DNA from: Fimbriosthenelais zetlandica
Taxonomy: Eukaryota
NCBI GenBank assembly: GCA_977030845.1
Contig: OZ365115.1
Coordinates: forward strand, 32,550,001-32,614,000
DNA length: 64,000 nucleotides
Direction of reading: 5' to 3'
Shown here: piece after piece, positions 8,809 through 19,453 of the stretch
How the letters are laid out: each line of letters begins with the position of its first letter
Position numbering within the stretch: the stretch's first letter is position 1
Program-made: the position numbers and the translations under genes
Notes under the pieces: generated by a model
Seen by the model: only the letters and a program-made list of their open reading frames with translations
What the model was told of the DNA's origin: nothing
Databases searched by the model: none

Positions 8809-10603
8809 ATGAAGCGACAATTTGATGATCAACAACTAGCATCCCTCAGTAATCCTATTCCCTCTAGTTCCCCTTCTGATACAAGTGCCGACACCAACAA
8901 CTCTTCTACCACCTCCATCCAAGCTTCCCCCTGCAAACGCCTTAACCCCATCACTAGTGTCAACAGAAGGTTCTCCAAGAAACCGCGTCTTAGTGGCTAC
9001 GACGAAGGCTACACCGACGACATCTTAGGACACCGAGAGACATTTCCTTTCAACGGTGTCAACCTGTGTGATAGTTTTGCTGAGAGCACTCATCACGCTG
9101 ACGGGTTCTTCTCTGGATCCACCAGTACAGATCTTGAAGGTTGTGACAGTCACAGTGAGCCTGGGGTGTCACCGTCAGTGACAGCTACGTCACTGCGATA
9201 TCCACAGGAACTGAAAGCAGCGACCAAGGTCAGTGAATACCTTCCTTCCTCCCAGCAGTTGGTGCATCAGCATCCTGAGACTGCTAGTGAGGCTCCCCAA
9301 CAACGTGAGGTCGACTCCACAACCACTAACACAAACATGAGGTCTAAACCGGAACCGGAACGGCTCATAGCCGAGAAAATGGACATAGACATGGAGGACG
9401 GCCACCCTCTGGGTGCCGAGTCTCCCGAACCTCCCATAGCCAGGCCTTTCCCCTGTATATGGCTGGACCGTAGCCAGGACCCGATGATGTGCAAGGAACC
9501 CCAGACAGAGACAATGAAGGTGCCTAACCTTCACGACGTCATGGTGACCAGCAGTGACATGCGCAATGGCTCTGATGGTGTTGCGCATGAAACCGGAAGT
9601 CAGCCGAGTGATGACGAGGCACGTCATACTCCCCAGCCTGCTCAGGGTATAGACTCTCAGCATAGTGTTGAAGCTCAACAGAGGGCCACGCTCGAACAGA
9701 CCATGCAGCAAATAATGAATGAGCGTTCACAGGTTGAACGGTCACCAGTTGAAAGGTCACACATGGACAGATTACAAATGGAAAGGTCTCCAATGGAGAG
9801 ATCTCAATTGGAGAGAAACCAGTTGGAACGTTCACAAATGGAGAGGTCCCCAATGGAGCGATCGCAGATGGAGCGATCCCAAATGGAACGTTCCCAGATG
9901 GAACGATCTCAGCTTGAACGTTCCCAGATGGAGCGTTCTCAGATGGAGCGCCCATCATTGGAACGATCTCCATTGGAGAGGTCACAGATGGAAAGATCTC
10001 AAATGGAGAGAGACCGCTCTCCTATGGAACGGTCACCACTGGAGAGAGAGCGATCCCAAATGGAAAGATCGCCTCTGGAACGATCCCAAATGGAAAGGTC
10101 GCAAATGGAACGATCCCAATTGGAGAGGTCGATGTTGGAGCGCTCACAAATGGAAAGGTCCCAATTGGAGCGTTCCCAACAATCCCAGCATTCCCCACAG
10201 CATCATTCCCTTTCATCCCTGCCTCCCATGCATCCTTCCCAGCATCCCCAGCGCCCCATGCATCCTGGGGAGCATCCCCATCAACCCCTAAATCCCCATC
10301 AGCCTAACGGCTACCCATCTATGAAAGAAGGCCTTACCCCCTCCCCCTTGAAGAATGGTCTCTCAGCGCACCATCACTTCAATGGTCTTCCACCTGAGGG
10401 TACAACGGTGGTGGGACCTGACGGCGAACCCCTCACCCTGGAGGTATGTCCAGAGTGTAACAAGGTGTTCAAACGCCGGGTCTACCTACAGCGGCACATG
10501 GAAAGAGAACACTGGTCCACGGCCAAAGTGTTCAAGTGCAGCGACTGCTCGTATGAAACCAAACATCAGAGTAACTTGTCAGTCCACCGCCGTATACACA
10601 CAG
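8809..10603 (+). CDS. C2H2 zinc-finger protein, coding exon 1: bipartite NLS-like motif, acidic/S-rich IDR, ERSQM repeat array, fingers 1 and 2
   Basis: Long ORF. ZF1 CPECNKVFKRRVYLQRHMEREH at 10447-10512; ZF2 CSDCSYETKHQSNLSVHRRIH at 10537-10599. Phase-1 donor ACAG|gtgagt at 10604 splits the TGERP linker. KR-x12-KKPR at 8935-8988. Confidence 0.92.
9721..10182 (+). repeat. Coding pentapeptide tandem array, 30 units of E-R-S-(Q/P)-(M/L), two units extended to 7 aa
   Basis: 154 aa translated from the ORF; synonymous codons vary between units. Confidence 0.95.
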
Positions 10604-17670: not shown

Positions 17671-17793
17671 GAGAAAGACCCTACAACTGCGGGGCGTGTG
17701 GACAAACGTATACCCAGGGGCATCTGCTCAAGTCACACATCCGGTCTCGGCACGGCGGCAACATGGAGTACTACAACCTGGATAAAAGCAACA
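17671..17793 (+). CDS. ZF gene exon A: 123-nt symmetric (phase 1-1) exon encoding finger 3a (ERPYNCGACGQTYTQGHLLKSHIRSRHGGNMEYYNLDKSN)
   Basis: Acceptor cttttgttttccag| at 17670 and donor AACA|gtatgt at 17794. In frame with exon 1, restoring HTGERPY. Confidence 0.85.
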
Positions 17794-17826: not shown

Positions 17827-17832
17827 AATAAA
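17827..17832 (+). terminator. Candidate intronic polyadenylation signal AATAAA, overlapping the stop of exon A read-through
   Basis: CAA-TAA-A at 17826-17832; TAA 17829-17831 is the first in-frame stop past the exon A donor. Confidence 0.4.
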
Positions 17833-18215
17833 GTCTTCTCTTTCAGGCAACAATTCAAAAATCACTCCATTACAGTATTCTTACATATACAAGCATTGGT
17901 GAATGTGTTGGACCGTCTCATGGGTTCCTCGGCTTTCAGTGGCCATCTTTTGGGCTTGGCTTAGCGCTATTGATTTCTTGTGTTCATCCACATCATAAAA
18001 CTAACATTATTTTCATCATTACTTTCATTAATAATGATTTGTATTTCATGCTAATATGTCTTCCAACGCTGGATGGACGCCCTTATGTCTCATACTTTCC
18101 CATTCAAATTGACCAAATTCATCCATCCTCTGATTGAACCCATCAGGCATTTTCATTAAAAAGCTTACAAGAATTTGTTTCTTGTTTTAAAAGAATGCTC
18201 TCCTATCTCTTCTAG

Positions 18216-19453
18216 GTGAAAGGCCATATCACTGTGGAGCTTGTGGACAGAGGTACACCCAGGGCCACTTATTGAAGTCCCACATCCGCAGTAGGCACGA
18301 GGGGAACATGGAATTCTATAATCTAGATAAGAAAGGGGAAAGCACAAGAGGCCGCAAGTCTCTTGACCCAAAGCTTGATCCCGCCTCCATGATGCAACAA
18401 AAACAAGAGAAAATCAATTCGTTGGTGGCTCAGATTGAGAGGCAGAAGATGAATCAAATGGTGGGGTCTCCCATGGCCTCATTCCTTGGTGCTAATATTC
18501 CTCCCTATATGAATGCACTTCGACCCTTCATGGCGTCTCCCATGGCAATGGGTAACTCCCTCATGGGAGGCCCACGAGTATTTGCCATAGGCAACATGCA
18601 GACGTTGGGTAACAGCATGATCCCCATCCCTGGAGGTCTACCCATGCTGGGGCCTAACATGGGCATGTCCATGGAAAGTGCTGGTATCAAGGTACCTCTC
18701 AAAGTCCCAGAGGTGCCAAGTCCAATCAGCTTCAACGAGCAAGGTGGTCCCAAGATCACACTCATTGACGATGCCATACCGCAAGACCTTACCACCAAGA
18801 AAAGTCCTCCGCTGAAGATCCCACCATCCGGTAGCCCTTCTCCCAACAGCCTGAAGAGCCCAACACTCATGAGGAGCCCAACCATGAAGAATCCTCCGTC
18901 CGTCCTCCGTGAGGTGAACGGAATGCCAACAAGCAACGGAGTTAACAAGAGAATGATGAACAATGGTGTCCTACACCCCGACGACCTGGACGACATGAGA
19001 CATCAGCCTGCATCCTCCCCCATGGGCAGCATGGACGAGGAAGCGGTAAGAGAGATGAGGGAAGATATTCCACCCAAGAAACTCATGGATGAAAAGAAGG
19101 CAGCGGCCATAGACTTCACATTTCCGGCTTGCAATGGGAGCAACCATAAGAACTGTGACCATGCACTCAAACTGCGTGCACTTCGCAAAAACATTGTTCG
19201 CATGTTGAGTGTGCTGACCCCTGACTTGGGTGTGGAGAACACTTTGGACTATGACAGTGACCAAGTTGATGAGCTACTACATGAAGTCATTTACAGCAAC
19301 ATCGAAGAGGAGGAAAACCAACTTCAGCAGTCTCCATCTGGGGGCCCACAGCACCCTTCCATGTCAGTGTCGATGTCACAACCATCAGTGTCACTGACGC
19401 AGCAGCCGCAGCCTCCACAACCACCACATCCACAGCAGGCCATCACTACCTGA
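18216..19453 (+). CDS. ZF gene terminal coding exon B: finger 3b, M/P/S-rich IDR, SIM-like plus PQDLT motifs, MORC3/4-like C-terminal segment, Q/P tail
   Basis: Acceptor ctctcctatctcttctag| at 18215, phase 1. Open frame to TGA at 19451-19453. Total 1010 aa without exon A, 1051 aa with it. Confidence 0.92.

Follow-up and report, generated by a model that had tools for sequence, protein, structure and literature searches.

The C-terminal module of a three-finger C2H2 protein encoded in the window (the whole 64,000-nucleotide stretch of DNA that was analysed) is truly homologous to the C-terminal ~50 residues of GHKL ATPases of the MORC3/MORC4 type. We regard this homology as established because a profile search, pairwise BLASTP, hhalign, Foldseek, and control searches all agree. 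The rest of the protein is unlike a MORC: in place of a GHKL ATPase, an S5, and a CW domain, it has three C2H2 fingers and a disordered linker. The last ~50 residues of MORC3 and MORC4 emerge from these comparisons as a discrete conserved domain, one that is reused by a DNA-binding zinc-finger family and, as a tandem pair predicted to pack on itself, by a third protein family.

A three-finger C2H2 gene and its orthologues

The gene carries the following features, all of which lie on the forward strand.

8809-10603 joined to 18216-19453, forward strand: spliced three-finger C2H2 gene, product of 1010 aa
8809-10603, forward strand: first coding exon, with its ATG at 8809, found by open-frame and C2H2 pattern scan
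9448-9465, forward strand: conserved N-terminal FPC-I-W-L motif, first coding exon
within the first coding exon, forward strand: long array of ERSQM-type pentapeptides
10447-10512, forward strand: zinc finger 1, first coding exon
10537-10599, forward strand: zinc finger 2, first coding exon
directly after 10603, forward strand: phase-1 donor GTGAGT at the end of the first coding exon
18216-19453, forward strand: last exon B, in the frame of the 18191-19450 open frame, stop codon at 19451-19453
18233-18298, forward strand: finger 3, at the start of last exon B
18341-18367, forward strand: conserved STRGRKSLD motif, last exon B
between finger 3 and the module, forward strand: disordered low-complexity linker of ~270 residues, last exon B
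18779-18802, forward strand: P-Q-D-L-T-T-K-K in the linker, a short linear motif of the CtBP type (P-x-D-L-S/T-x-K/R)
19130-19162, forward strand: Cys/His lead-in C-x7-C-x-H, adjoining helix 1 of the module (alignment A1)
19154-19300, forward strand: C-terminal module, last exon B
19301-19450, forward strand: extension of ~50 residues, acidic and then Q/P/S-rich (alignment A6)

Translation of 19154-19300 on the forward strand yields CDH, the 43 residues that had been quoted in the first-pass annotation, and YSN, with the first codon of the quoted peptide at 19163 on the same strand. The fingers are of the classical C2H2 class, as the pattern scan of the window finds tandem C-x2-C-x12-H-x3-5-H fingers with TGERP-type linkers. 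Orthologues P0005, P0006, and P0015 have the same fingers as the first coding exon, and Pfam assigns zf-C2H2, zf-H2C2_2, and zf-C2H2_16 to P0005 and P0006. The FPCIWL motif at 9448-9465 also recurs in orthologues (P0005, P0006, P0015), including that of Capitella, where it takes the form F-P-C-I/V-W-L/M.

A word-indexed protein search with exon B found 46 relatives, nearly all of which are last-exon gene models running from the start of finger 3 to the end of the module. All named members of the zinc-finger family are lophotrochozoan (molluscs, annelids, and one brachiopod), and include Mytilus, Dreissena, Babylonia, Octopus, Bulinus, Elysia, Lingula, Capitella, and Owenia; many other members are without a name. 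Orthologue annotations are automatic and mutually inconsistent (‘ZEB2-like’, ‘Ikaros-like’, ‘myoneurin-like’, ‘ZNF777’, ‘ZNF366’, ‘ZNF333’), and the family lacks a curated name. On full-length orthologues, Pfam reports C2H2 families only and leaves the tail without a match, and on exon B it reports no family. That a zinc-finger protein ending in a MORC-type tail had not been described, as the earlier reading held, fits both the lack of a Pfam match for the module and the disagreement among the automatic names. No GHKL ATPase, S5-fold domain, or CW zinc finger was found by Pfam in exon B or in full-length orthologues, and because these domains are absent, the window gene is not a MORC. When residues 600-672 of P0006 were used in a word-indexed search, three family members and nothing else were returned.

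The module is homologous to MORC3/MORC4 tails

A profile built from 29 modules of the zinc-finger family only (alignment A1) was searched with HMMER against 1,835,955,588 representative proteins, and 132 matches were obtained at E ≤ 0.001. Below the zinc-finger family, these include true MORCs, which are recognizable by the Pfam domains HATPase_c_3, Morc6_S5, and zf-CW, and in each of which the match covers the final ~50 residues. Among the matches are a cluster of 1112-aa amphioxus MORC proteins (P0114/P0189, E = 1.1e-6), a Saccoglossus protein (P0127, assembly GCA_000003605.2, E = 5.4e-5), and a 960-aa protein named MORC4 in turtles (P0146, 35.8 bits, E = 5.7e-4). P0127 is a short gene model of 596 aa in which Pfam finds HATPase_c_3 and zf-CW only. 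This significant similarity to the last ~50 residues of proven MORCs places the window module in the MORC type.

Pairwise BLASTP aligns the window module with turtle MORC4 P0146 at 18 of 44 positions identical (E = 1e-9) and with amphioxus MORC P0189 at 22 of 49 (E = 8e-13). When the zinc-finger profile was compared by hhalign with an independent alignment of MORC tails (A2), the E value was 2e-16. The first-pass annotation had proposed that the module resembles the MORC3/MORC4 C terminus, and this is upheld by the A1 search (E from 1e-6 to 6e-4), by hhalign (98.7% probability), and by BLASTP (41-45% identity to MORC tails). The profile search of the segment that it had suggested as a check indeed returns MORC C-termini as significant matches (E down to 1.1e-6).

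Structural comparison points in the same direction. Using Foldseek, we compared the AlphaFold model of the window module with 550,129 Swiss-Prot models, and the top three matches are all MORC tails, although with weak E values of 0.6-1.7. Human MORC3 ranks first (residues 879-935 of 939), with 34% identity over 62 aligned residues at E = 0.6, and is followed by mouse MORC4 (869-924 of 928) and mouse MORC3 (879-938 of 942). The approximately 19 identities in 42 positions that the first-pass annotation had given for the end of human MORC3 are consistent with this alignment, which corresponds to ~19-21 identities at that weak E value of 0.6.

It might be argued that a short, helical segment resembles MORC tails by chance, or through convergence of amphipathic helices that share no ancestry, and the weak Foldseek E values speak for such an origin. 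We nevertheless consider this extremely unlikely. The E values of 1e-6 to 6e-4 were obtained against 1.84 billion sequences, and reversed and tail-shuffled controls (1344 sequences) reach at most 8.9 bits, as opposed to 34-45 bits for the MORCs. Agreement furthermore extends to non-helical positions, namely the invariant Pro and a D-x-V-D-E motif, and all matches fall at one place, the C-terminal end. Together with the hhalign result, these E values, controls, and matching non-helical positions effectively refute a chance or convergent likeness of coiled-coil-like helices.

The MORCs that were verified to carry the tail are all deuterostome, and a word-indexed search with the MORC4 tail found amniote MORC4 only. 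Short tail-like fragments for which no taxon is named group with the amphioxus and Saccoglossus MORC in the module tree, and they align by tblastn to the last 100-158 residues of these proteins (E = 1e-9 to 8e-15). Judging from these alignments, the fragments are probably the ends of invertebrate MORCs. The MORC-tail-like last exon P0136 (L001:4049-4606) encodes, ~70 residues before the module, a V-I-I-I-D-D-S-S stretch followed by acidic residues, which looks like a SUMO-interacting motif. Two turtle records in the MORC4 cluster, P0155 and P0162, are named ‘RNA-binding protein 41’ and yet have the MORC4 tail module at their end; read-through between the neighbouring RBM41 and MORC4, or a merging of their gene models, is the probable cause.

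Anatomy of the module

The module is predicted to form two amphipathic helices separated by a loop that opens with an invariant proline. Its signature is L-x2-L-R-x6-L-x4-P, a loop of ~14 residues, and then D-x2-L-x2-V-x3-N. Across 63 sequences from the three carrier families (alignment A4), one Arg and one Pro are invariant, and at least 90% conservation is seen for the two Leu residues before the Arg, for one Leu after it, and for the Asp, Leu, and Val of helix 2. The hydrophobic residues of helix 1 have a heptad-like spacing in the same alignment. AlphaFold models the single module, as a segment of 69 aa, with a helix at residues 13-36, a loop, and a helix at residues 52-68, at moderate confidence (pLDDT 67). 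By its alignment and its model, the module is a predicted helix-loop-helix with a conserved signature. The tails of vertebrate MORC3 and MORC4, as well as those of the amphioxus and hemichordate MORC, share this ~50-residue helix-loop-helix at or near the C terminus, with Leu, Arg, Pro, Asp, Leu, Val, and Asn invariant at the corresponding positions.

Within the zinc-finger family, identity to the window module ranges from 41 to 95% in A1, with one divergent sequence at 25%. What separates these modules from those of the MORCs is the lead-in: a Cys-x-His/Tyr element, preceded by another Cys at a distance of a few residues, is present in the zinc-finger family and lacking in MORCs. The second Cys of the lead-in (C16) is invariant in the family, and the His that follows is sometimes Tyr (A1). 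It is possible that the lead-in at 19130-19162 forms a metal site or serves a redox role.

In nearly all matches, the module lies 0-5 residues from the C terminus. The window protein, in contrast to most orthologues, continues for ~50 residues after the module, and its closest relative, P0001, also has such an extension between the module and the end. The extension of the window protein ends in A-I-T-T, and some orthologues end in A-I-K-T or R-K-T (alignment A6).

The module belongs to no Pfam family, and no solved structure is related to it. With isolated modules as queries, Pfam assigned no family and showed nothing beyond weak coiled-coil noise on the MORC4 tail. When all PDB chains were searched with the module sequence, the only matches were chance ones to ribosomal L29 (E = 0.3). 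Searches of the ESM Atlas provided no lead, with scores of 0.72 for the module and 0.78 for a tandem-module protein that are below the useful range.

A third family carries the module in tandem

Besides the zinc-finger proteins and the MORCs, the module is carried by a family of lophotrochozoan proteins that are long, reaching 2150 aa, and in which no Pfam domains are found. This family is undescribed; two members, from a chiton (Liolophura LOC135481237) and from Owenia (A0A8J1TRC2), are named only ‘uncharacterized’. Its modules, which are C-terminal, belong to the same module family (hhalign 98.8%). Unlike the window protein, 31 of the 32 third-family proteins checked have two copies in cis, ~75 residues apart, and the second copy is preceded by an invariant C-x5-C (alignment A5). 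Representative stretches are as follows, with ~30 other proteins in A5.

P0101, residues 572-702: tandem-module stretch
P0113, residues 610-749: tandem-module stretch

AlphaFold models the 131-residue double module as four helices (mean pLDDT 87.4, pTM 0.80) in which the linker alone is uncertain, with ~27 low-confidence residues. The pTM of 0.80 is reached despite these linker residues, and therefore a defined packing of the two units is implied. The two tandem copies are accordingly predicted to pack as one compact four-helix unit. This compact model is the best available hint to what the module binds, and it suggests that the partner of a module is another module. Foldseek against the PDB and a wide VIA-align search with the double-module model gave generic helical matches only, with E values of 1.4 or above and a best Z of 5.3.

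A CtBP-type motif in the divergent linker

The linker is highly divergent, with a mean column identity of 27% across 15 orthologues, a few short islands excepted. Within its ~270 residues, the D-L of the motif at 18779-18802 are the sole invariant residues in the 15 orthologues, and the surrounding P, Q/E, S/T, and K/R are largely retained. Judged by motif alone, this conserved P-x-D-L-S/T-x-K/R in a disordered region is of the CtBP-recruiting kind, and we take the pattern to be the CtBP-binding motif consensus of short-range repressors. Because the conserved linker motif fits this consensus, the three-finger factor is probably a repressor with a candidate CtBP motif.

Well-known CtBP-dependent short-range repressors with P-x-D-L-S motifs include Knirps, Snail, Kruppel, and ZEB. 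Like the window protein, they are DNA-binding factors, of the C2H2 or another class, that carry P-x-D-L-S-x-K/R in a disordered region, whereas the window motif has Thr where the canonical CtBP motif has Ser. To our knowledge, no classic CtBP repressor has a MORC-type tail.

How the module may work

Perhaps these elements act together. In our best explanation, the MORC-homologous tail would pair with a second copy of itself, the zinc-finger protein would form a homodimer, and repression would be of the CtBP type; we give this joint reading about an even chance of being correct. One module would pair with another of its own kind to build a four-helix unit, in trans for proteins that have a single copy, as opposed to in cis for the tandem copies. 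Homodimerisation of the zinc-finger factor would place two three-finger heads on DNA and would double the DNA footprint, and the CtBP-type linker motif would supply repression. The MORC tail might likewise join two MORC protomers at their C-terminal ends. Self-association of MORC3 has been assigned to its C-terminal coiled-coil region, and homodimerisation of the zinc-finger factor would mirror it (PMC8627505). The pairing, the identity of the partner, and the repression are the steps that we infer here.

Several observations count against this explanation. The module is non-terminal in this species, with ~50 residues after it, and the single-module model is of moderate confidence. Moreover, the zinc-finger-family module is kept tighter than a simple dimer interface usually needs, and this tight conservation could reflect a conserved external partner. 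It is conceivable, then, that the module docks a common third protein, such as a chromatin or SUMO-pathway factor, and that the three carrier families are its parallel clients. Such docking would fit the very strong conservation that surface positions show in the zinc-finger family, as well as the placement of the module at the extreme C terminus of three otherwise unrelated architectures. The function of MORC3 relies on the recruitment of partners such as DAXX (PMC8516933). The tandem arrangement, however, with its confident compact model, is more simply read as module-module packing. We know of no candidate for a common partner, and we consider docking of this kind unlikely.

In a maximum-likelihood tree of 67 modules, every family forms its own group, and the zinc-finger and MORC modules are jointly split from both tandem copies with branch support of 97/90. 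Because the module of each family is its own clade, the choice of partner may be family-specific. The tandem family supports module-module pairing but leaves the partner unspecified.

By analogy with the KRAB/KAP1 system, the zinc-finger module could also pair with the MORC3/4-type tail of its own species, so that the zinc-finger protein would direct a compactor that is blind to sequence. In the tree, the zinc-finger module is closest to the MORC module, the two are 41-45% identical over the whole module, and the factor also resembles a repressor, given its CtBP-type motif. Furthermore, the recruitment of MORC3 by transcription factors has been called open, and direct contacts with transcription factors are suspected (PMC13373173). 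However, the zinc-finger and MORC modules fall into different clades, each with residues of its own, which is the pattern that self-pairing within each family would produce. A zinc-finger-MORC heterodimer would also compete with the MORC-MORC pairing at the C terminus that is thought to be needed for the clamp. In addition, every MORC verified to have the tail is from a deuterostome, and the tail-like fragments only resemble MORC ends. On this balance, we see the adaptor role as rather improbable, and homodimerisation of the zinc-finger factor is more likely than the recruitment of a MORC.

A similarly doubtful extension is that the lophotrochozoan three-finger protein uses the shared module to bind a MORC3/4-type ATPase, with the double-module proteins acting as bridges or competitors in the same pairing network. 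If true, a DNA-reading adaptor would aim the MORC chromatin clamp at chosen sites, and the extreme C-terminal tail that human MORC3 and MORC4 carry, so far uncharacterised, would gain a first function.

Relation to known zinc-finger and MORC systems

KRAB zinc-finger proteins recruit KAP1/TRIM28 silencing, and SCAN and BTB domains make dimers. As in these proteins, a C2H2 array is combined here with a small interaction domain, which in our case is a predicted one. The window module is unrelated in sequence to KRAB, SCAN, and BTB, is C-terminal rather than N-terminal, and accompanies only three fingers. Thus, the kind of architecture, a C2H2 factor with a small interaction domain, is known, and what is new is apparently the module, an undescribed domain.

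Chromatin compaction and the silencing of transposons and viral DNA are functions of MORC ATPases, which nonetheless read no DNA sequence. It is acknowledged to be an open question how MORCs find their targets (PMC13373173). Should cross-pairing between zinc-finger and MORC modules occur, it would constitute a KRAB/KAP1-like targeting system for MORCs. Descriptions of the C-terminal half of MORC3 speak of a mostly disordered region that contains a coiled coil and SUMO sites (PMC6614601, PMC8627505, PMC8516933). Neither a discrete terminal domain of MORC3 nor the presence of such a domain elsewhere is described in PMC6614601, PMC8627505, or PMC8516933.

A possible alternative exon for finger 3

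The intron between the two coding exons of the gene holds a further candidate exon.

17671-17793, forward strand: candidate alternative exon A, which repeats finger 3 and is flanked by a phase-1 acceptor and, after 17793, a GTATGT donor

Exon A is a duplicate of the third-finger exon with identical phase. Joining exons 1, A, and B keeps the frame and gives a product of 1051 aa. Left unspliced, exon A runs into a TAA stop codon at 17829-17831, which lies inside an AATAAA (17827-17832), and the product of exon 1 and this exon A read-through is 651 aa long, without the linker, the CtBP-type motif, or the module. Exon A is possibly, therefore, a candidate alternative last exon that would yield the predicted 651-aa isoform. 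A look-up of sequencing runs for the exon returned none, whether of RNA or of any other kind. The first-pass annotation had also envisaged a switch at exon A that toggles the module, and with this exon geometry such a switch is feasible.
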